Shown here piece after piece: positions 15,316 through 61,437 of a stretch of DNA of 64,000 bases. The translations under genes were made by a program, and so were the position numbers. The first letter of the stretch is position 1. Every line of letters begins with the position of its first letter. Under the pieces are notes generated by a model, which saw only the letters and a program-made list of their open reading frames with translations, had not been told where the DNA came from and ran no database searches. The DNA is from Histomonas meleagridis 2922-C6/04-290x (Eukaryota > Protista > Parabasalia): assembly GCA_020184695.1 (NCBI GenBank), contig JAANOX010000085.1, positions 248,001-312,000 of the forward strand. Reading direction: 5' to 3'.

Positions 15316-16148
15316 TAGAGGGGTCCAAAAGTCTTTACATCCCACTTTTTCTCGATAACTAAAAGATATTTTAATGAAACTTGTATGATAGTCTTAAATG
15401 TGTAGAATATTTTATCTATATATATATTTTTTCTTATGTGAATGTATAATGAGTTGTGTACGTTTAAAATTTTATACGTCATTTTTTTCCTAAAATGAAA
15501 ACAGAAATTCGAACGGTATTTCATTATTGCTTTTTTCGTGGATTATCAGTTGAAGATACATATAATGAAATGATCATAGCTTATGTCCATAAGGTTCCTC
15601 AACCCAGAACAATTAAGAAATGGTTCGAGAGATTTGAAAAGAAATCAGAAAGCATCGAAGATTTACCCCGTACGGGGAGACCTGAAAAACATCTATGAAT
15701 GAGGTTGTTCTTAAACACATTCATAAGAAGGTATAAGAAAGGAGACCTGTAACTGGTACAAAAGGCTGCATGATTCATATGGACAATGCACCATGTCATA
15801 ACTCCGATAGTGTATCAAATGAAATCAAAAAATATGGATCTGCACGCATGCCACACCCACCCTACTCCCCAGATATTGCTCCTTGTGACTTCTGGTTATT
15901 TGGGTTTATAAAAGAAGCGTTAAAGGGTTACCAGTTCAATGGGGAGGAGACCTTGATTCAAAAAATCGTTCGAATTTTGAGCACGATAAAAAGGTCAACT
16001 TTACAACGAATATATCGCGAATGGTGTCTCCGTCTTGAATGGGTAATTAACAACGGAGGGGAGTACTATAAGAATATCTACATAAAAAAAATTCTAATTA
16101 TTATTTATTCAGAAAAAGGCATGTTGCACGAACTTTTGGACCACCCTA
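15316..16148 (+). mobile_element. Internally deleted, non-autonomous mariner (D,D34D) element, 833 bp
   Basis: TIRs TAGAGGGGTCCAAAAGT (15316-15332) and ACTTTTGGACCACCCTA (ending 16148), with TA duplications at 15314-15315 and 16149-16150. N-terminal HTH (RTIKKWFERF..EDLPRTGRP) and C-terminal DNAPCH-x-SPDIAPCDFWLF with 34 residues between the Asps. The middle of the transposase is missing and there is an in-frame TAA. Confidence 0.93.
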
Positions 16149-16450
16149 TATTCATGTTAACTATATCTGTTATTTATCATTAAAAATCTAGATAAAATAC
16201 AAACCACAACGAAAAAGTAATACAAAGTGTTATCAAATATCCATTATACTAAAAGCAATGGAAAAGATTTAAAGAATCAATGAAAGTGATCAAAATGGAT
16301 AGGTATAAATATATTTTAGACAAAGATATTAAAATTATCCAGATTCCTAAACATAAAAATTAACATTGGCTTATATAATAAATTAGATATTATAAATTTT
16401 GCTAAAAGTCATCATACCTTATATAAATAATTTGTTTCAAATAATTTCCC

Positions 16451-17948
16451 TTATTCTAAAAGTAATTTAACTATTTCTGTATGACCATTCCAAGATGCTC
16501 TAATAAGTGCTGTATTAAATAATTTAAATAATTTCCAAATATTATTTTGAAATAGAAAATTATTAAAATAAATTTTAAATAAAATAAATAAATATCTTTA
16601 GCATTAATATCAATTCCTTCTTGTTCAAGAAGTAATTTAACTATTTCTGTATAACCATTTCTAGATGCCCACATAAGTGCTGTATCAAACAACTTAAATA
16701 ATTTCCAAATATTATATTGAAATATCAAATTATTAAAATAAATTTTAAATAAAATAAATAAATATCTTTAGCATTAATATCAATTCCTTCTTGTTCAAGA
16801 AGTAATTTAACTATTTCTGTATGACCATTCCAAGATGCTCTAATAAGTGCTGTATCAAACAACTTAAATAATTTCCAAATATTATTTTGAAAAAATAAAT
16901 TATTAAAATAAATATCAAATAAAACAAAAAAATATCTTTAGCATTAACATTAATTCCTTCTTGTTCAAGAAGTAATTTAACTATTTCTATATGACCATTT
17001 CTAGATGCCCACATAAGTGCTGTATCAAACAACTTAAATAATTTCCAAATATTATTTTGAAATATAAAATTATTAAAATAAATTTTAAATAAAATAAATA
17101 AATATCTTTAGCATTAATATCAATTCCTTCTTGTTCAAGAAGTAATTGAACTATTTCTGTATAACCATTTTCAGATGCCCACATAAGTGCTGTATCAAAC
17201 AACTTAAATAATTTCCAAATATTATTTTGAAAAAATAAATTATTAAAATAAATATCAAATAAAACAAATAAATACTTTTAGCATTAACATCAATTCCTTC
17301 TTGTTCAAGAAGTAATTTAACTATTTCTGTATAACCATTTTCAGATGCCCACATAAGTGCTGTATCAAACAACTTAAATAATTTCCAAATATTATTTTGA
17401 AATATAAAATTATTAAAATAAATATCAAATAAAACAAATAAATATCTTTAGCATTAATATCAATTCCTTTTTGTTCAAGAAGTAATTTAACTATTTCTGT
17501 TCGACCATTTGAAGATGCTAAAATAAGTGCTGTTTCAAATAATTTAAATAATTTTCAAATATTATTTTGAAATATAAAATTATTAAAATAAATTATATAT
17601 AAAACATATAGATATCTTTAGCATTAACATTAATTCCTTCTTGTTCAAGAAGTAATTTAACAATTTCTGTATGACGTCTTTTTAAAGCACAAATAAGTGC
17701 TGTTTCAAATAATTTAAATAATTTCCAAATATTATTTTGAAATATAAAATTATTAAAATAAATATCAAATAAAACAAAAAAATATCTTTAGCATTAACAT
17801 TAATTCCTTCTTGTTCAAGAAGTAATTTAACGATTTCTGTATGACCATATATAGATGCAATCATAAGTGCTGTCCAAAATAATTTAAATAATTTCCAAAT
17901 ATTATTTTGAAATATCAAAATAAATTTCAAATAAAACAAATAAATATC
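16451..17948 (-). repeat. 170-bp tandem array: 102-nt ankyrin module plus 68-nt AT-rich spacer
   Basis: Flanking TA pairs (+ strand positions): 16525/16593, 16695/16763, 16865/16933, 17035/17103, 17205/17273, 17375/17443, 17545/17613, 17715/17783 (all 68 apart) and 17885/17945 (60 apart). Adjacent spacers are exactly 102 nt apart. Confidence 0.95.
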
Positions 17949-19122
17949 TTTAGCATTAATATCAATTCCTCTTTGCTTTAAAATGTATGTAACAAGTTCA
18001 ATATTTCCTGAAAATGAAGCAAAAACCAAAATATCTTCTGGAAGTTGATTATTTTTAAGGAAATATTTTACAAGAAAAATATTTCCAATTTTTGCTGCTT
18101 CATTAATGATATTTTCATTAATTTTCATTCCTCCTTTTTCTAAATATGTAAAAATTTCATAATTAAAATATGAAACACATATTTTTCCTAATTCTTTTAA
18201 ATTATTATTATCTTCAATTTTATTTTCATAAAGATAATAAAAAATATCATTTCGATGAAATTCAATTGCTGTTTTATATGCATCTTTAAATGATGAATGA
18301 TTTTGTTCACATAAATGAATAATTTCTTCATTTCCACCTGCAACTGCATATTTACCTGTGTTATCTATTTTAGAATCATTCATAAGTAAATATTTAAAAC
18401 ATTTAACTGATCCAAAAAATGCTGCATAATCAATTAGTGTAACATTCCAATTGTTAATAAATGAACATCTTTCATAAATTGATTTTGGAATAATTTGATT
18501 ATAATCGAATTCATTTTGTGATGATATTTCTTGTAGTTTTTCTATTTTTCTTATTTCTAATTATTTTTTTGCAATTTCATTTGGATTAACTCCTTCTTTA
18601 ATTAATTGCTTATGAAGTGCAAAAATCATTCTTCGAAAGTTCTTCATAAGAAATATTTTTCTTGATTATATTTATATCTAACTAATTGATCTTGATTAAT
18701 ATGAACAAAAATGGTTCACATTTATTTTTGGATGATTTTTTTGATTCAATTAAATTATACTTAATCATATAATTAAGTAAATAAAATGATTCTTGAGTGT
18801 TTTCTTGAAGAAGAAATTGAGAAAATAAATTTATTATTTTTGAGTTGATATTATTATTTTCTTCATATTTTTCAATTTCTTGTAATAATCTCAAATATAT
18901 ATCAAAATTATTACTATTAATCAGAAAAGAGATATATATCATTTGGCATATAATGATATCATAAGATATTGGATATTCTTTACAAAATTTGCTGAGAATA
19001 ATATTTGATGATTGAGGAAAATTATCTATATTCAAACCAAAGATTATGTTCTTGAGCGTTGTAAATGTTTCCCATTCGTTTTGAGATTTCTGGTTTGTTG
19101 TTGCAGTTTGCTTTTGATTCAT
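16451..19122 (-). CDS. DUF3447-type N-terminal domain plus ankyrin array interrupted by nine TA-flanked spacers (gene or pseudogene)
   Basis: ATG at 19122. IDYAAFFGSVKCFKYL / GKYAVAGGNEEIIHLCEQ is typical of trichomonad DUF3447-ANK proteins. Nine further 34-aa ANK modules follow, ending at TAA 16451-16453. Homopolymer frameshifts lie at about 18540-18740. Confidence 0.75.
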
Positions 19123-19134
19123 TTTGAACGGATA

Positions 19135-19171
19135 CTAGTAATGGCACTTTTTGAGCTTTGCTCAAAAAGTG
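19135..19171 (-). mobile_element. Helitron-like 3' terminus (hairpin plus CTAG|T)
   Basis: Perfect 12-bp stem CACTTTTTGAGC-aaa-GCTCAAAAAGTG (19145-19171), followed 6 nt later on the minus strand by CTAG and then T. No Rep/helicase ORF or 5' end identified. Confidence 0.55.
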
Positions 19172-20745
19172 TTCCCTCCATCTAACTAACTTATTTATAA
19201 AATTATTATTGAGAAAATAAATTGATTTAATTTTAATATTAATTAATGATGTAATTTACATTTTTATTTCATTAACTTCGAGAAAACAATAACTAAGAAA
19301 ATAATATTTATAATTTAAAAAACATGAATATTTCAACTACAGATTACAAACAGAATAAAAAATAATAACAAAATAATAGAAATGATTGAAGTTAATATCT
19401 GAAAAATAATTTAGATCAATATCCTATAGGATAATGAAGGAAAAAAATTAATATAGGAAGCCGCTCCGATAGATGAAATTGAATAATTGTAATTACGGTT
19501 AGAGTGTCAAATTATGAAAATAGAAACATATTTATTAAGGACGATTCTTGTATATTATCACATGGGTTAACAAAATTTATGTTATTTTTGAGATTACATT
19601 CCTTTTTAATTAAATATAAAAAAATTCCTTTTATAAAATTTTACATAACTTTGTTGAAATATACAAGAACTAATGTAGATCATATTTATGAATAAATAAA
19701 CTGCAAAAATTAATTTTTGATGGAAATACAAAGTGATCAATTACGAGAAGGAAAAATTAAAAATTGAATATTTTCATCTAAAACAAACACACTTAAAATA
19801 TGGATTTATGTAATGTATCATTTATTTCAAGTCTTGAAAAGGCATTAAGAAAAACGAATTTTTATGATTTTAAAGTACAATTTTCGACCGTTTATTTATC
19901 CGAGCGTAAATATAAAAATATAGAACTTTTTCTTTGTGGGAATCAAATTGGCAAGAAGAATTTCAAGAAAATTAATTTATATTATAAAAATCATGACCTG
20001 TAAATATCAAAACAAAATTCTCAATTATATAAATAATAATTGAAACTTCTTGATTTCTTTGAGTTTCAAACAAACACGAAAACATTTTTTTTGACAGTTT
20101 TAACTAATTTAAGTTCAAAATTTGCTTGAATTTTTGCAATGGAGAAATACACTCTAGTTTCATCAAGTAAAATTCGAGGTGATTATGTCGTGCTTGACGG
20201 CCAATATTGGTGTGTTGCTGATATGTATGTGGAAGAGTATCTTTTTTCATATACTATATGTATTACTGGATAAGAATTTACAACAGGGAAAACTTCTTGA
20301 TCTTCAAGGAAATATTTCAATAGAAATTTTTCGGAAAAAACTCAACCAAATTTATATACATTAATTAAAGGTGATAAAATATGGCAAAAAATGGGCTCTT
20401 GCCTCAAATATGATTTTCCTTGATCGTTTAAAATCGATTTTTTAGAACAGACTTAACAGGAAAACCTCTCAAAAAGAACACAGCGTTGTTTCGAAAAACA
20501 ACAATAACATTCGCCTTTTGAAGATAATGAAAATACAATAGTGGGGGTGCGAAACCTCAAGTCAAATTGCAGTCAGGAGCTGCCGTGAGAAAATAACGAT
20601 AAGTAAACGGTGTCCTAGCAAGAACAATATTGAATTGTTTATTTTCTGTATCGGTCGATAGGGTGTTTTGAAAAGTGTTGTGGGATATTTATATGTCATT
20701 TTTATTTGAATGAAAATAAAATTGCTACTGGTTGTCTGAGCAAAA

Positions 20746-48395: not shown

Positions 48396-48660
48396 CTAGA
48401 ATTTTTTGGTTTGAGAATTTAATATTTCAACAATTTCTTTGTAACCATTTCGAGATGCCATTATCAGTGCTGTTTCAAATATATTAAATTAATTCCAAAT
48501 ATTATTTTGAAATATTAAATTATCAAAACAAATTCTAAATAAAATAAATAAATATTTTTAGCATTAAGATCAATTCCTTCTTGTTCAAGAAGGAATTTAA
48601 CTATTTCTGTATGACCTTCTAAAGATGCATGCATAAGTGCTGTATCAAATAATTTAAATA
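48396..48660 (-). pseudogene. Orphan 3' fragment of the spacer-interrupted ankyrin family (two modules, one 68-nt spacer)
   Basis: LFDTALMHASLEGHTEIVKFLLEQEGIDLNAKN, then a TA-flanked spacer (TA at 48553 and 48485), then IFETALIMASRNGYKEIVEILNSQTKKF*. Confidence 0.85.
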
Positions 48661-48845: not shown

Positions 48846-51800
48846 TTATTTTTTGTTACGATACGATTCTATATTAAACAAATCCTTTCTATATCCCTCT
48901 GTAATTTTGAACTCGTTATGATTCAACAAATCTTTTACGTCTTCTGTCACCACTATCATACCCAACGGCGCTTCTGACTCCACGTCTTGTGCCATATCTA
49001 TTGCATCACCTCCAACTCTAAACAAAGGGATTTCATTTTCTATTATTACATTTCCTTTTAATTGGCCCAACGCGATACCAATTCTTGGCTGAATACTTAA
49101 GTTGACTGTTGAACTTGGGTTTTCGAAATGTTCTATTAAATCTTCGCAAAAGAAAACGACATGTTTAACATTTTCTTTTAAGTTTTGTTCTTCATTATTA
49201 TCCAATAACCCAATACAAGCGATTATGTTTGTACTATTTTCTCGAATTATTTGTATTGAAGGATAATTATTTTTAATTTCTTCGATTGCATCATAAATTA
49301 AACTTAAAGAAGATATCAAATTTTTAGGCAACATTGAAAACACATTATTTTCAGTGCCAACAAGTTCGACATATATTACTACAGCTGAATCATTATTAAT
49401 CATTAAGTTTTTAACATTATTTTGTTGTTGTTGATAATTATTATTATTATCTAATAATTGTTTCGGTATTAAAGCATTAATTAATTGTTTGTTTCTTTCT
49501 TTAGCTTCATGAATTAATTGTTTTTGATTAGTTTCTGTTTCCATATTTTCCATTAATATAGTAATTGAAGTTAATTTATTATTATTATCAAATAATGGTA
49601 TTAAAGAAGCCTTTATAAATATTAATGAATTACTTTCTGTAATACAATATGTCGGTATAGTTGGTTCGATTTCATTATTTTCGACTTGTATTTCTTCAAT
49701 ATATGAATAAAATCGTGATGAATAAAAATGTTGTTTAGAATCAGGATCATAATTAGTAGGTAAAGGTATAAACCAATTTAATGATCGACCTAATATTTGA
49801 TCTGGTAATAACCCAGTTAATTGTTGTAATGAAGGATTAATATTTTGTATTATTAAATTAGGATCAACAGTAATAATTGAGAAGTTCGATGAATTTAAAA
49901 TTGATTCACTTGGTGTCATTATGTTTGTTTCAATGTTATTATTATTATCTAAGATATTATCCATTAATAATTTATTATGTACAATAGATATTGGTGGTAA
50001 TAATAATATCATTTGATGAAAGAATTTAAATGATATTGAATAAAAGTAAATATAAACTATTTCATATATAAATAATACTAACGTTACAAATATTAATCCT
50101 GCTACTAATCCATAGACACCATTTAATTGACGCTTTGTATAATTATATGTGATTTGATATATTTGATCTTGAAATGATCGTAATTCATTAAATAAATGTA
50201 AATCTAATAAATATATTATTGTAGAAAATGATGAAGTTCTAAATTCATTACCAAAGACAAATTCACTGAAAGCTCTCATTAATATATTTACTTTGTTATT
50301 AATACTAATACAATTCAAATATTGAGAATATGATAAATTTGTATGATCTTCACATTCATCTTTAATATAATATGAAGATTCATCATTTAAACTAATGACT
50401 TTTTGTGTTATTTCTAAATTATAACTAATTAATACATTAATGTATTTTTCATAATCTTGTTTATCTGGGAAATATACACTATATGAAGTTTTATCAACTA
50501 TAGATCTTAATATGATTGATAATAAAGCAATTAATCGTCGAGAATTTAATTCTGCTAATGAATTTATATCTTTTAGATATTCAATGATGTTTTTCATTGA
50601 TATAATTAATATTATAAATAAAACACATAATAAAATTATTGCTAAAAATGATATTGATGCTAACCCAATATCATTTGAATCTTTTTCTTGTGTAGAATGT
50701 GATGAATTTAATGTTAATTTTCCTTTATTCTTTAGATATATTGGTTGAAATGATTCGATAATATCTTCTTCTTTAAAGTTTTCAATGATTTTTAATATTT
50801 TATTTGAATCTTTTTTAACTAAATTATAAAATGGTATTCCTAATAATACAAATGCTATTAATGCTATAACTCCTAATATTATAGGTAATACAGTACATAA
50901 TTTAATCATACGATCACCTTCTTCATCAATTTGTGTCTTTAAGTTTTGTTCTAATAATATAAATAATGATGAATAACCTGGTGTGTTTAAAAACACTGGC
51001 ATTATATATTTTAACATTAATAAAGGAATTTCTGTCAAGTCATTATATCTTGAAACTAATTCACTTAATATTAAAGCAGCATAATGTATATAACTTCGAA
51101 GTGTTGAAGGGAAATTAGTAAAGTTTTCAGTTTCTGATAAATGTTTATATTCATTAGTTGAATAATCATTTAATACATTAATTTCTTGTATATAATTATT
51201 TGAATTATCATAAATAATTCGTAATTCTGTGTCTGTTTGATATATTAAATCTTTAATAATATCAGTACAAGTTGTTACAAATGTATCAAAATATGAAGTA
51301 GAAAAATCAGTTAAATTTTGTTGTTCTTCTAAAGTAGGAAATATATCTTTAATTAATTGTTCTTTTTCATAATAACCTCTTAAGTTTAATAAGTTAACAG
51401 CACCTATAATAGATATATATTCAATTGACGTCGAAATATTTGTAATAACTGGATTAGTTTTGAAGAATTCCAATAAAGGTGTAGTACAATAAGAACAGAT
51501 ATAAATAGTTATTAAACATAAAGCTATTAATATAACAAATTGTATAATTGCTATTATTGTAGAATAAATTAATGAATTAAATTTATAATGTTTTAATGAG
51601 TTTTGTATTAATAACCTTAATTTACTATGTGTAAATAATGTAGGTATTAAATCATCATATTTACGACCAAATCCTTCTGATGAAGAAGAAGTATCAGATT
51701 CTGTTGTATTAAAACTTTGTTCTGATTTAGTTTCATCTAATTCATCATCAATGAAAGAACCTCTTTGATTTAATATACCTAATTTAATATAATCTGGAAA

Positions 51801-53513
51801 TAAATTAACAAATAAATGATATGAATGATCAGTTGAAGTTCTTTTACCTAATTCCATATCATAAGCAATTTTTGCTATTCGAATGGCTGATCGATAATCT
51901 CCCATACCTTCAATTAAATAACGACAATAACATTCATATATTTTTTGTGAATTTGGATATTTTTCAATTGTATCTAAAAAGACAGAATTTGTTTCATTAG
52001 ATAATACTGCTAATGATTTTAATGATGCCATTGTTACATTACTTTTAGCTTTAATTATTTCATTCCAAAATCCTCGAATTGTCGCTATAACTTCATTGGA
52101 ATGTTTCTCTAATGATGCTAATTGTTTATTACCTTCAATTGAGATTGTACTTTGTCTTAATATATGAATTCGATGTACTTGAAACAATAAATATTTTTGA
52201 AATATGTTTAAATTTGGTAAATTAGATACTAATGATAAACAAACACTTAACATTTGTTGTTGTGATGGGAAATATGATAAAAATTGTAATATGTCTAATA
52301 ATATAGCAGGATGTGAATAAAAATCTAATAAATATCTTATAAATGAAAAATCAATGAATAATTTACAATGATATTTAATCCCAATCCTTAACATCATCTT
52401 TGCATGATCCATGTTTTTAAATGTTAATGAATCAAAATATTTATATTTTTCTGTATCATCTTTAGGCTCTTCATTATTTAATATCTTTATAACATTATCT
52501 CTTCTTTTCTTAAATATTATTATGTTAACAATTAATGCAATAATTATAATTCCAAATCCTATCGATGATACTATTTCACTATAATCAATAGGAAATGCAT
52601 TTGTTAATTGTAATATAGAAATAATACAATTATAAATATAATAAAAGATTAATGACGCTGAAATTATTGTATACCCATAATAATAATGTGGAAAATATAA
52701 ATAATATCGATATACAACAATAAATAATAATAAAATAAATATTATAAATAAATACATTAACCAATGAGCAAATGATTCAACTGCTGTCCCTGTAATTGCT
52801 CCTAAAAATGTGATTATTGCTAAGATAACATTGGGACGCGGATCCCATCCGCCTGAAATGTTATTAACTAAAAATGGAGTTTGTGAAAACATATAAATAG
52901 AGAAAATGTGTATAGTAAAGAATGATACAAATATTAAAACCGATATTAGAAATAATATAATGTTCTTAATAGAGGCATCAGTTGTAATGGCTACAAATGC
53001 TTTGCCCGAATATATTGCTGTCGGACAAATTAAAATATTAATAATGACCATACAAAAAGTTTGCCAAGTTGCAACTTGAATCTTTAAAAATGTCTTCTTG
53101 GACCTGTGGTATATGATTGTAATTGTCACTAACACAATCATTAGACCATATATGACCACAATAACTATAAATTGAGTAAGAATTTCATCAAATGATTTAT
53201 AGGTCATCCCAAAGTCTGCAAACGCAAGAAAAACAGAGGTTCGTGAATTTATGGAGCGATAAGAAACTTCTTTTGATACAAGCATTGAAGAAATAACAGA
53301 TAATTGGAAAAACTGAACTATAAAATGAATGACAACAATTATGTTTGGTATTTTGCTATGAGTAGAACATTCTTCATATAATGGATATAAAAAATCTTCA
53401 GTTGCACGATGAAGTTTCCATAGCTGCGCCTCTGTAGTACTTGCCACACTAGCTCCAGATCTCCCTGTTGTTTTTTGAGATGTAGATAAAACTGTTGTTG
53501 TCACCGAAGTCAT
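48846..53513 (-). CDS. Multi-TM PAS plus class III nucleotide-cyclase-like protein (degenerate catalytic domain)
   Basis: N-terminal TM bundle, PAS-like SIITVDPNLIIQNINPSLQQLTG, and a C-terminal cyclase fold (VVIYVELVG, RIGIALG, GGDAIDMAQDVES). Confidence 0.8.
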   Translation of the reverse strand: MTSVTTTVLSTSQKTTGRSGASVASTTEAQLWKLHRATEDFLYPLYEECSTHSKIPNIIVVIHFIVQFFQLSVISSMLVSKEVSYRSINSRTSVFLAFADFGMTYKSFDEILTQFIVIVVIYGLMIVLVTITIIYHRSKKTFLKIQVATWQTFCMVIINILICPTAIYSGKAFVAITTDASIKNIILFLISVLIFVSFFTIHIFSIYMFSQTPFLVNNISGGWDPRPNVILAIITFLGAITGTAVESFAHWLMYLFIIFILLLFIVVYRYYLYFPHYYYGYTIISASLIFYYIYNCIISILQLTNAFPIDYSEIVSSIGFGIIIIALIVNIIIFKKRRDNVIKILNNEEPKDDTEKYKYFDSLTFKNMDHAKMMLRIGIKYHCKLFIDFSFIRYLLDFYSHPAILLDILQFLSYFPSQQQMLSVCLSLVSNLPNLNIFQKYLLFQVHRIHILRQSTISIEGNKQLASLEKHSNEVIATIRGFWNEIIKAKSNVTMASLKSLAVLSNETNSVFLDTIEKYPNSQKIYECYCRYLIEGMGDYRSAIRIAKIAYDMELGKRTSTDHSYHLFVNLFPDYIKLGILNQRGSFIDDELDETKSEQSFNTTESDTSSSSEGFGRKYDDLIPTLFTHSKLRLLIQNSLKHYKFNSLIYSTIIAIIQFVILIALCLITIYICSYCTTPLLEFFKTNPVITNISTSIEYISIIGAVNLLNLRGYYEKEQLIKDIFPTLEEQQNLTDFSTSYFDTFVTTCTDIIKDLIYQTDTELRIIYDNSNNYIQEINVLNDYSTNEYKHLSETENFTNFPSTLRSYIHYAALILSELVSRYNDLTEIPLLMLKYIMPVFLNTPGYSSLFILLEQNLKTQIDEEGDRMIKLCTVLPIILGVIALIAFVLLGIPFYNLVKKDSNKILKIIENFKEEDIIESFQPIYLKNKGKLTLNSSHSTQEKDSNDIGLASISFLAIILLCVLFIILIISMKNIIEYLKDINSLAELNSRRLIALLSIILRSIVDKTSYSVYFPDKQDYEKYINVLISYNLEITQKVISLNDESSYYIKDECEDHTNLSYSQYLNCISINNKVNILMRAFSEFVFGNEFRTSSFSTIIYLLDLHLFNELRSFQDQIYQITYNYTKRQLNGVYGLVAGLIFVTLVLFIYEIVYIYFYSISFKFFHQMILLLPPISIVHNKLLMDNILDNNNNIETNIMTPSESILNSSNFSIITVDPNLIIQNINPSLQQLTGLLPDQILGRSLNWFIPLPTNYDPDSKQHFYSSRFYSYIEEIQVENNEIEPTIPTYCITESNSLIFIKASLIPLFDNNNKLTSITILMENMETETNQKQLIHEAKERNKQLINALIPKQLLDNNNNYQQQQNNVKNLMINNDSAVVIYVELVGTENNVFSMLPKNLISSLSLIYDAIEEIKNNYPSIQIIRENSTNIIACIGLLDNNEEQNLKENVKHVVFFCEDLIEHFENPSSTVNLSIQPRIGIALGQLKGNVIIENEIPLFRVGGDAIDMAQDVESEAPLGMIVVTEDVKDLLNHNEFKITEGYRKDLFNIESYRNKK

Positions 53514-58777: not shown

Positions 58778-61437
58778 ATTATTCCTCTTATTTTTATTCT
58801 CTTTTCTATACATTCATTCGAAATATTTGATCATGTAACGAAAACACTTACTATTACAAATTCTAGTGAATATCAAACGAAGGATGAATATCTAACCCAA
58901 GCTCAACATATTATAATTTCTGGAAGTATCGAAGAAATAGAAAATAACGCATTCTATGAATGGCCTATGAAATTGGAAAAACAGTTACTTCGATTGGAAC
59001 AATAGCATTTTCTAAATGTATTTACCTTAGAAACGTAACAATTGGAGATAATGTGATAAATATAATGCATGCTGTATTTAGGGAGTGCATTAACTTAGAA
59101 AATATAACATTTGGAAAAAGTGTAGCAAATTTAGGAAAAAATGTATTTCAATATTGTTCCTCATTAACAAGTATAATATTACCAAATTTAATTAATTCAA
59201 TTTCAGATTATACATTTCATTTATGTTCAAACATAAAAGTAATCACAATTCCTGATTTGGTTGTTTCAATTGGGAATTATGCATTTTTAGAATGCGGTGG
59301 GTTGAATTGGATCAAATTAAACACAAATTCAGCACTCACTGTAATTGGAGTGGGTGCTTTTCGAAACTGTGTTTCATTAATATATTTTTTCGTTCCGAAA
59401 AATGTTAGTTATATTACATCATTTGCTTTTGCAGGATGTGACAATTTGCAATTTATCGAGGTATCTGTAGAAAATATTTATTTTTGTAATAGTAATAATG
59501 GAATTCTTTATAATAACAATATTACAAAAATTATTTGTTGCCCTCCTATAATTTCATCGAATTTATTTGAAATCCCCAATTCTGTTGTCACAATTGGAAA
59601 TAGTGCATTTCACCATAGTCAAATGAACAAATTTAGTATTGGGGAAAACGTTAAAACAATTGAAGCTAATGCATTTTATCAAAGTCGGGTAAAAGAATTT
59701 AACATTGGGAAAAATGTTCAAACAATTGGCAATTATGCATTTTATCAATGTAATTATTTGGTAAATATCACAATTCCTAATTCAGTTACTTCTATCGGAT
59801 CATATATATTTTCTGGCTGTTCCAGTTTGAAAACTGTCAACATTGAAGGAAACTTAAATATTATTGAAGATTATGCATTCGTTGACTGTTCATCATTAAC
59901 AAATATCACAATCCCTGATTCAGTTACATCTATTGAACCTTATGCTTTTGGTTCATGCAAATCACTAAAAAATATTTTAATTCCAAAGTCAGTCATAAAT
60001 ATTGGATCACCAGTCTTTATAGGATGTACAAATCTCATGTTTATAGAAATATCTGAAGGAAACGATTATTATTGTCATGATAACAATGGAATTCTTTACG
60101 ATAAAAGACTTACCAAAATTATTTGTTGTCCACCAGGAATTTCATTAAATACGATTGAAATCCCTGAATCAGTTAATACAATTGGAGATTATGCGTTTTA
60201 TCAATGTTTAACATTAATAAATATTTTAATTCCAGATTTAGTGACAACAATTGGAATTTATACATTTTATAAATGCTCATCATTAACAAGTATTGTAATT
60301 CCTGATATAGTTACAACTATAGGACGTTATGCATTTTATGAATGTTTATCATTAACAAATATCTTGATTCCTGATTTAGTTACAACAATTGAGATTCATC
60401 TATTTTATGGATGCTCTCAATTAAAAACAATTATAATTGGCGAAAGTGTATCAACAATTGAAAGTTCTTCATTTTACAACTGCAAAAATCTTACTTGTAT
60501 TTATTTCAAAGGGAATAAATCCCCCACTATATCAGCTGTTTGTTTTACTAATGTGCCAGTAAAATATGTTATAACATCATATTTATATCAGGATTCGTTA
60601 TTTGGTCCTTTTTCCGTGTCTAAAGTTGCATCAGTTGAAGGATGTGATCAATATTTTCCAACATATACATTTACTATGTCAAATACTTTTTCAAAATCAA
60701 ATACACTGACTCTATCAAATTCATTTTCTAAATCTAATACATTTTCTAATTCAAATACATATACAAAATCAAATTCATTTACTAAAACGAATTCATTTAC
60801 TAAATCAAATACATTTTCTAATTCAAATACATATACAAAATCAAATTCATTTACTAAAACTAATTCATTTTCTGATACCAATTCATTTACTAAAATTAAT
60901 ACATTTTCTAATTCAAATACATATACAAAATCAAATTCATTTATAACTTCAAATTTAAAATTTAATATGACATTTATTGAAACAATAGTTTTAATTCAAT
61001 CAATTACAAGAACAGTTATTTCACGAACTTTCTTTTCGAACACAATAACTCTTTCTATATTTGGTTCTTCATATTCTTATATTGAAACTATATTCGTTTA
61101 TTATAATTATACTATTATTGAATATTCATCATATATCTCAATTTATTCAGGTTTTTATACGATTATTAATGAAAATGAAAATAATTATAATCAAAATACG
61201 AATGATCAAATCATTCTTATTGTTTGTATTTGTGTTGCCATAATTGTGATTATTATAATACTTGTCATTATTCTTGTTCGTATTCATAATAAAAAACAAA
61301 GTAGTCATGAAAGTATGAATGAAGACAATAATAATAATAAAGATATTACATTTAATAATTTTACTAACCTTTCAAATATTGATGAAGATCCATTTGAACA
61401 AGATTTTAAAGAAGAGAAATATTTTCAAAATATTTAA
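58778..61437 (+). CDS. BspA-like (TpLRR) type I surface protein, with an apparent frameshift near 58970 and no ATG at its signal peptide
   Basis: Signal-like IIPLIFILFSIHS at 58778, about 20 TpLRR repeats (LTSIxIPxxVTxIGxxAF), an SNSFTK stalk, a TM helix and an acidic tail DEDPFEQDFKEE. The frame changes at AFYEWP / EIGKTVTSIG. Confidence 0.85.
60670..60950 (+). repeat. Coding 18-nt repeats encoding SNSFTK/SNTFSN/SNTYTK stalk
   Basis: Hexapeptide S/T/N-rich tandem repeats just before the TM region of the BspA protein. Confidence 0.9.

Follow-up and report, generated by a model that had tools for sequence, protein, structure and literature searches.

Tandem 17-nucleotide pieces, probably intron-like elements, in the ankyrin loops of a probably damaged Histomonas meleagridis gene copy

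An ankyrin gene copy on the minus strand of Histomonas meleagridis contig JAANOX010000085.1 (positions 248,001 to 312,000, the 64,000-nucleotide (nt) window analysed here, with a GC content of ~29%) carries an array that is interrupted at nine hairpin loops by an AT-rich gap. In its full form this gap consists of four 17-nt T-rich inserts (5'-ATTT...TATTT-3') parted by three single codons, the last of which is usually GGA. The inserts are probably 17-nt intron-like elements of ankyrin loops, found here in a probably damaged copy of the gene. It is likely that each 17-nt piece is excised from RNA and the single codons are joined, with recognition through short end motifs and exact length. An original prediction, made from the sequence alone, had read the same gaps as 68-nt spacers bounded by TA repeats; its observation is partly confirmed and its interpretation partly supported.

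The gene copy belongs to the DUF3447 ankyrin repeat protein family of trichomonads. Curated Pfam cut-offs are passed by DUF3447 (48.4 bits, cut-off 26.9), by Ank_2 (45.4 bits) and by Ank on one module (37.6 bits), the DUF3447 and Ank matches spanning 17949-18560, and the product of a metagenome relative (L001) aligns by tblastn to 19122-18742 and 18623-17946. A conserved 28-nt gap motif occurs 10 times in the window and 0 times in 100 shuffles, and its tenth occurrence marks a truncated second copy.

16451..19122, minus strand: whole gene copy, with an N-terminal region, DUF3447 plus first ankyrin region, and the nine-loop ankyrin array (ATG 19122, TAA 16451-16453)
17949..18383, minus strand: open stretch of 145 codons from an internal ATG to the first NAKD, holding part of DUF3447 and the first ankyrin repeat
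48396..48660, minus strand: second copy, orphan and 5'-truncated, with two modules and a C-terminal cap ending in TAG
48477-48553, minus strand: loop of the orphan copy, 77 nt, read as 17-AGA-17-AAT-17-GGA-17

Tandem Repeats Finder describes the array (16460-17970) as a minus-strand repeat with a period of 170 nt, 8.9 copies, 90% matches and 0% indels. Each unit combines an ankyrin module of 93 nt (xTAL...GIDINAKD) with an AT-rich gap of 77 nt behind it, and its 170 nt equal 102 + 68. There are nine gaps, each after NAKD or NAKS, in eight units of 170 nt and a first unit of 162 nt, just as had been predicted. Rebuilding the open reading frame (ORF) also bears out the claim that a net removal of 68 nt per unit (60 in the first) leaves a continuous frame, which runs from ATG 18383 to TAA 16451-16453 (442 codons). 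The gap itself does not behave as the single 68-nt block that was proposed, since a 17/3/17/3/17/3/17 parse fits 8/8 full units, the orphan loop and seven diverged units of relatives. A typical gap reads ATTTATTTGTTTTATTT + GAT + ATTTATTTTAATAATTT + TAT + ATTTCAAAATAATATTT + GGA + AATTATTTAAGTTGTTT, then GAT ACA GCA CTT. The proposed TA direct repeat is a product of the chosen cut point; those insert ends that can be placed unambiguously (AAA/ATTT...TTT/TAT and GGA/AATT...TTT/GAT) are not TA. Under this parse the nine loops are as follows.

17877..17945, minus strand: loop 1, 69 nt; inserts 17929-17945, 17897-17913 and 17877-17893; kept GAA (17926-17928), a 9-nt remnant of insert 2 plus GAT (17914-17925), and GGA (17894-17896)
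17707..17783, minus strand: loop 2; inserts 17767-17783, 17747-17763, 17727-17743 and 17707-17723; kept GAT, TAT, GGA
17537..17613, minus strand: loop 3; inserts 17597-17613 (variant ATCTATATGTTTTATAT), 17577-17593, 17557-17573 and 17537-17553; kept ATA, TAT, GAA
17367..17443, minus strand: loop 4; four 17-nt inserts; kept GAT, TAT, GGA
17197..17273, minus strand: loop 5; four 17-nt inserts; kept GAT, ATT, GGA
17027..17103, minus strand: loop 6; four 17-nt inserts; kept AAA, TAT, GGA
16857..16933, minus strand: loop 7; four 17-nt inserts; kept GAT, ATT, GGA
16687..16763, minus strand: loop 8; four 17-nt inserts; kept AAA, GAT, GGA
16517..16593, minus strand: loop 9; four 17-nt inserts; kept AAA, TCT, GGA; then a shortened last module to TAA 16451-16453

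The anatomy of the gaps can be read directly from the DNA, and the length of the pieces hardly varies: 35/35 intact pieces in the nine loops of the gene, 4/4 in the orphan copy and 28/28 in the seven parsed units of relatives measure 17 nt. This is a very narrow length distribution below 20 nt, such as characterises fixed-length ultra-short introns. Among 36 distinct 17-mers, which follow the consensus 5'-ATTT[A/C]...TATTT-3', 26 begin with A, 6 with G and 4 with T; positions 2-4 are typically TTT (position 2 is T in 27), position 14 is A in 32/36 and positions 15-17 are TTT or TTC. The shorter spacer of loop 1, 60 nt in the original prediction, is a 77-nt gap whose second 17-mer has lost 8 nt internally; in the relative L002, the homologous loop has its full length of 77 nt. 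The frame of loop 1 is open both with the 9-nt remnant retained (37 codons after removal of three inserts) and with it skipped (33 codons), and it survives retention because 17 - 8 = 9.

Removal of four 17-mers and removal of one 68-nt block give the same ORF length, so frame continuity cannot separate the two models; loop chemistry does. Cutting out four 17-mers yields NAKD-D-Y-G-DTAL, NAKD-K-D-G-DTAL and similar forms, which are the canonical ankyrin hairpin loop NAKD-x-x-G-xTAL. Gly occupies its loop position in 8/9 full four-insert loops of the window (the eight full units and the orphan copy), and across these nine and the seven units of relatives the same removal gives x-x-G/E/K-xTAL followed by an intact module. 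The Pfam Ank profile aligns to the module only from profile position 3, and its positions 1-2 (x, G) are supplied by the kept codons. Clean insert-free repeats were too few for an ankyrin profile of our own, and direct comparison and Pfam coordinates were used instead: in every such repeat compared (from the window gene at 27-1025, P0012, P0018, P0020 and ten metagenome contigs), G stands two residues ahead of TAL. A search of JGI and ENA metagenome contigs for the insert-free loop pattern yielded, from unrelated organisms, nothing but generic ankyrin genes of the GADVNAKD type, which serve here solely as an example of the canonical loop.

If instead one TA-bounded block of 68 nt were removed per repeat, by RNA splicing or by excision from DNA, the junction would read GATAAGTTGTTTGAT and every unit would give NAKD-K-L-F-DTAL, the D-K-L-F junction that had been predicted. 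This model accounts for the same net length and hence the same 442-codon frame, and it is possible to place a TA dinucleotide at either end. It was rejected, and we give it hardly any weight, since it creates a non-ankyrin loop with Phe where the profile and the insert-free repeats have an invariant Gly, and it leaves unexplained both the placement of variation within the array and the loop lengths of relatives, which are taken up below.

Across the eight full units, minority letters per cell amount to 0.22 in the kept codons (9 columns), 0.07 in the modules (93 columns) and 0.03 in the inserts (68 columns), with insert 2 invariant. Kept codons differ from inserts (Fisher odds ratio 8.9, p = 6e-8) and inserts from modules (Fisher p = 0.002), p-values that overstate independence because the units are related by duplication. 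The same pattern bears on a further rival account, in which the inserts were never removed: these would be untranslated pseudogene arrays, spread by tandem duplication and gene conversion, and intact paralogs without inserts would be the source of the insert-free RNA described below. A dead spacer that evolves neutrally would not be expected to be better conserved than the rest of the unit, yet the 17-mers are the least variable part, and neutral decay gives no reason for variation to gather on just those three separate triplets that encode the loop residues. In favour of such a relic, the units of the array share recent ancestry, and their stop-free state is not independent evidence.

Protein searches with the ORFs of the window returned almost exclusively short ORF fragments from ENA metagenome assemblies, most of them ending in read-through of the first insert (...NAKDIYLFY...); the protein database matches comprise metagenome DNA-derived fragments only, with no transcript-derived protein of the family among them. 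Seven metagenome contigs from several samples (L001-L007) served as relatives. Their diverged inserts, for example GTTTATTTGTTTTATTC, ACTTATTTCAATTATTT and GTCTCAAGACAATATTT, keep the same parse, and a loop alignment of 13 sequences and 101 columns contains no gap, though the inserts differ at 16-28% of sites. Where inserts are present or absent, the change comes in exact 17-nt steps: loops of L005 contain three inserts, with 63 nt up to the ACA codon, and L006/L007 follow a four-insert loop (AAA, GAT, GGA) with an insert-free loop, AAG GAT GGA AAG TCA GCA CTT, in the same frame. Loops of 63 nt and 12 nt, differing by exact multiples of 17, have no explanation under removal of one 68-nt block. 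A dead relic, in turn, is at odds with the exact length and position of diverged inserts and with the mixture of four-insert and insert-free loops in one frame of L006. Differences between the modules of relatives are fewer at second codon positions (0.15-0.19) than at third positions (0.27-0.33), which, judged from these sequences, is a coding pattern; the conservation of second positions speaks against a relic and supports the predicted coding selection on the modules.

RNA evidence was drawn from runs in which an index finds this stretch, namely four of DNA, made in 2021 from two samples, and four of RNA, made in 2023, under one organism label. Contigs were mapped on 17380-19250 for RNA runs X5, X6 and X7 and DNA run X1; the family is repeated and thousands of short contigs map, which places the RNA evidence at the level of the family. 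Eleven of the best-supported joints fall at 17945/17946, right after the NAKD codon, in RNA runs X5-X7 and in 0 contigs of X1, whose joint counts are incomplete. Module-to-module joints do appear in X1, which indicates that the DNA run is able to show joints, and the absence of loop joints there is difficult to reconcile with an origin of the insert-free RNA in insert-free paralogs. The letters between the joint sides, together with the loose ends, make up 9-15 nt and spell canonical loops such as DNYGDTAL (GAT AAT TAT GGA GAT ACA GCA CTT), DEYGDTAL (GAT GAA TAT GGA GAT ACA), DKGGRTAL (GAT AAA GGA GGA AGA ACA) and DRNGKTAL. None of the RNA loop forms displayed contains K-L-F, a further point against removal of a single 68-nt block and against the predicted junction. 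The idea that the spacers are removed thus stands in part, as family RNA fits a net loss of 68 nt, while their removal as one block does not.

Word depth points in the same direction, with the reservation that it reflects expression poorly. The RNA/DNA ratios of word depth are 0.57-0.71 in modules and 0.016-0.046 in pure spacer bins for X5, 0.11-0.15 and 0.002-0.004 for X6, and 0.08-0.11 and 0.001-0.003 for X7. Spacers are thereby depleted in RNA 12-90-fold relative to modules, although in DNA spacer words outnumber all others (4.2-5.2 million in spacer bins, the highest depth of the stretch, against 1.2-1.8 million in most module bins). The intergenic segment 19144-19250 is covered by the DNA run and has an RNA depth of 0 in X5-X7, so plain DNA contamination does not explain the RNA runs. 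At 18151-18246 and 18462-18532 there are RNA contigs with 0 mismatches, indicating that this copy, or an identical one, is transcribed. An abundant X5 RNA contig (17707-17727, with a joint from 17727 to 17444) has NAKD GAT-GAT-TGT-GGA followed by insert 4, still in place; it may reflect incomplete processing or come from a paralog bearing just insert 4, and incomplete processing would imply that the pieces are removed independently. Three sampled words of the loop 3 variant (ATCTATATGTTTTATAT + ATA, 17577-17640) occur in DNA run X2 (sample S2), not in X1 (sample S1), and no RNA run is listed for them, which may reflect a difference between the two sequenced strains or sparse sampling.

These data also bear on two ways in which the inserts might be overcome elsewhere than in RNA processing. 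Excision at the DNA level, in all or part of the nuclei that express the gene, would fit short, AT-rich elements of exact length, which resemble the internal eliminated sequences (IESs) of ciliates. Spacer words are nevertheless at the highest depth of the DNA, and insert-free joints are absent from a DNA run whose counts, as noted, are incomplete; moreover, parabasalids are not known to have separate germline and somatic nuclei. DNA-level elimination is therefore a most unlikely account. Paramecium IESs and Tc1/mariner footprints, to which the original prediction had compared the spacers, share with the inserts a short, AT-rich and precise interruption of coding sequence. The analogy fails, given that IESs are bounded by TA and lost from somatic DNA, whereas the boundaries here are not TA and the elements are kept in the DNA runs at very high depth. 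Alternatively, the inserts could stay in the mRNA and be skipped by ribosomes. In T4 gene 60 and in yeast mitochondria, ribosomes bypass inserts of tens of nt, and GAT codons flank insert 1 in some units. However, take-off and landing codons do not generally match (AAA...TAT, GGA...GAT), a ribosome would have to hop four times per repeat, at very low efficiency, and both the family RNA contigs without inserts and the depletion of spacers in RNA count against translational bypass, which we hold to be extremely improbable.

The state of this particular copy has to be considered separately. Three-frame translation and alignment with L001 reveal two in-frame stops and a frameshift (+1, 18621-18625) upstream of the array:

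18561..18684, minus strand: lesions upstream of the array, namely TAG 18682-18684, an extra T in the T-run 18621-18625, and TAA 18561-18563

Paralog contigs are one letter shorter at 18621. L001 has an in-frame TAA of its own at 760-762, in a position differing from the stops of this copy, and in both the stops lie in the linker that connects the N-terminal region to DUF3447, a sign that pseudogenes are common in the family or that this linker has some unexplained peculiarity. The 17-nt inserts were considered as a source of the N-terminal frame breaks and rejected, since the breaks, which lie in A-rich sequence, come down to point stops at two sites and a homopolymer that differs by 1 nt. The copy is probably decaying, or shortened at its N-terminus with translation from the internal ATG 18383.

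Several observations weigh against excision of the inserts from RNA. Besides the lesions of this copy and the two limits given above (on the X1 joint counts and on word depth), the junction predicted for this locus is in none of the RNA contigs displayed, and the RNA loop forms belong to paralogs and were read in short Logan contigs of 60-100 nt. The gene at 27-1025 on the plus strand, a member of another ankyrin subfamily (GVNINQQNNNGYTALMYA...), has unbroken, insert-free loops, and insert-free and insert-bearing ankyrin genes thus coexist in the genome; together with the insert-free loops in the DNA of L006, this means that some RNA loop forms could come from insert-free DNA. A first piece of 18 nt, GTTTTTTTTGTTTTATTT, is found in the loop L003:396-476, which equals L004:705-785 and is identical in two samples; either this is a lesion that breaks the frame, or the length rule tolerates some deviation. 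Lastly, neither a splice signal nor a branch motif nor a conserved RNA structure was found in the inserts, and nothing therefore points to a known machinery. Of these points, the two stops and the frameshift, the insert-free loops of relatives and the lack of a locus-specific spliced contig among the mapped RNA contigs, as well as the in-frame TAA of L001, are also what a dead relic would lead one to expect. The original prediction had held such a dead gene in reserve, and it was right that the copy is damaged upstream and that inserts spread by duplication; the strict 17 nt in relatives and the RNA forms are left without explanation. Altogether, a relic whose inserts were never removed is improbable.

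Excision from RNA remains the reading that we prefer. Each 17-nt piece would be cut from the pre-mRNA, at sites predicted to within 1-2 nt, and the single codons, which specify the loop residues x, x and Gly, would be joined to restore a normal NAKD-x-x-G-xTAL ankyrin loop, the 68 nt removed being 4 x 17 nt. Recognition would probably depend on short end motifs plus an exact measure of length, the machinery could be a divergent spliceosome or something else, and the inserts surely spread through the family by repeat duplication. The predicted lack of GT-AG, AT-AC and ACTAAC signals in the gaps holds true of the pieces. With respect to U2-type ends (GT or GC...AG), 0/36 distinct 17-mers end in AG, and the CTAA/ACTAAC branch motif of U2-type parabasalid introns is absent from every 17-mer listed. 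U12-type AT-AC signals (5' ATATCC, 3' AC and the branch site TCCTTAAC) were not found, the ends of the 17-mers being ATTT and TTT. No conserved RNA structure was found in the loops (RNAalifold consensus -2.4 kcal/mol, with one pair showing a compensatory change), and single-sequence folding gives no support for a hairpin in the spacer (z = -0.13); the inserts do not show the conserved pairing that brings together the ends of structure-defined introns of the tRNA-type bulge-helix-bulge or euglenid nonconventional kind. A window-wide search for other 17-nt pieces that join two open frames gave nothing convincing outside the ankyrin family. Two genes of the window consist of long unbroken ORFs, a BspA-type leucine-rich repeat (LRR) protein at 58960-61437 on the plus strand (LRR_5, E = 6e-142) and a protein of 1555 residues with PAS and adenylate/guanylate cyclase domains at 48846-53513 on the minus strand, and the 17-nt pieces are accordingly not general to genes in the window.

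Comparison with known systems places the inserts near several of them and within none. Euglenid nonconventional introns are removed from nuclear pre-mRNA without GT-AG borders, are of variable length, have ends paired by secondary structure and are excised by an unknown mechanism; the inserts share the lack of GT-AG borders and differ in their fixed length and lack of significant structure. The ultra-short introns of mikrocytids, of Stentor and of the Bigelowiella nucleomorph are taken to have standard GT-AG ends. They resemble the inserts in a tiny and narrow length range (17 nt here), conserved sequence, many instances per genome and, probably, absence from RNA, whereas the inserts have A/G/T-TTT...TTT ends without AG, lie in tandem with 3-nt exons and are confined in the window to one ankyrin family. 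The introns of Trichomonas vaginalis have GT and AG ends. Those of its type B come from the same phylum, are likewise very short with a largely poly-T interior and lie in part in repeat-protein genes, whereas the 17-mers have no CTAA, GT or AG and stand in tandem. For mikrocytids, spliceosomal introns of 16-17 nt with conserved sequence are described in a study that also cites lengths of 15-16 nt in heterotrich ciliates such as Stentor and of 18-21 nt in the Bigelowiella nucleomorph (PMC10245619). Trichomonas introns measure at least 23 nt, and the short type B introns of T. vaginalis, at 23-25 nt, have a CTAA branch motif near the 3' end, number ~60 per genome and occur singly (PMC12316389). 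The H. meleagridis genomes (43 Mb, 28.7% GC, two strains) have 573-638 annotated introns, at most one per gene (PMC8529796); the GC content of the window and the two DNA samples of 2021 agree with these genomes. A literature search returned no description of 17-nt non-GT-AG pieces or of single-codon exons in parabasalids.

Next to the 3' end of the ankyrin gene, at lower coordinates than this minus-strand gene, lies the remnant of a Mos1/mariner-type transposase (15495-16183, plus strand). It consists of two ORFs, the first matching Pfam HTH_48 (E = 9e-11) and the second having a DDE-like tail and no Pfam match. Along with the DUF3447 ankyrin family and the BspA-type LRR protein, this remnant identifies the DNA as parabasalid.

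If the inserts are cut from RNA, they would be among the shortest intervening sequences known and, as far as could be found, the only ones that lack GT-AG and stand in tandem with single-codon exons. This would challenge ideas on the minimal size of exons and introns and on how splice sites are recognised. A more specific version, possible but on the unlikely side, is a dedicated, non-spliceosomal cut-and-join system for RNA that measures exactly 17 nt, with a protein ruler or a guide RNA, and ligates one-codon exons. If true, a clade of trichomonad gut parasites would possess a class of intervening sequence that is new and escapes the gene finders now in use. Because the length is fixed and the end motifs are simple, reporter constructs offer an easy test of the system. 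For H. meleagridis itself, a poultry parasite, gene models of a large ankyrin family are cut short at every loop, and analyses of its proteome and of gene expression consequently miss these ankyrin proteins.

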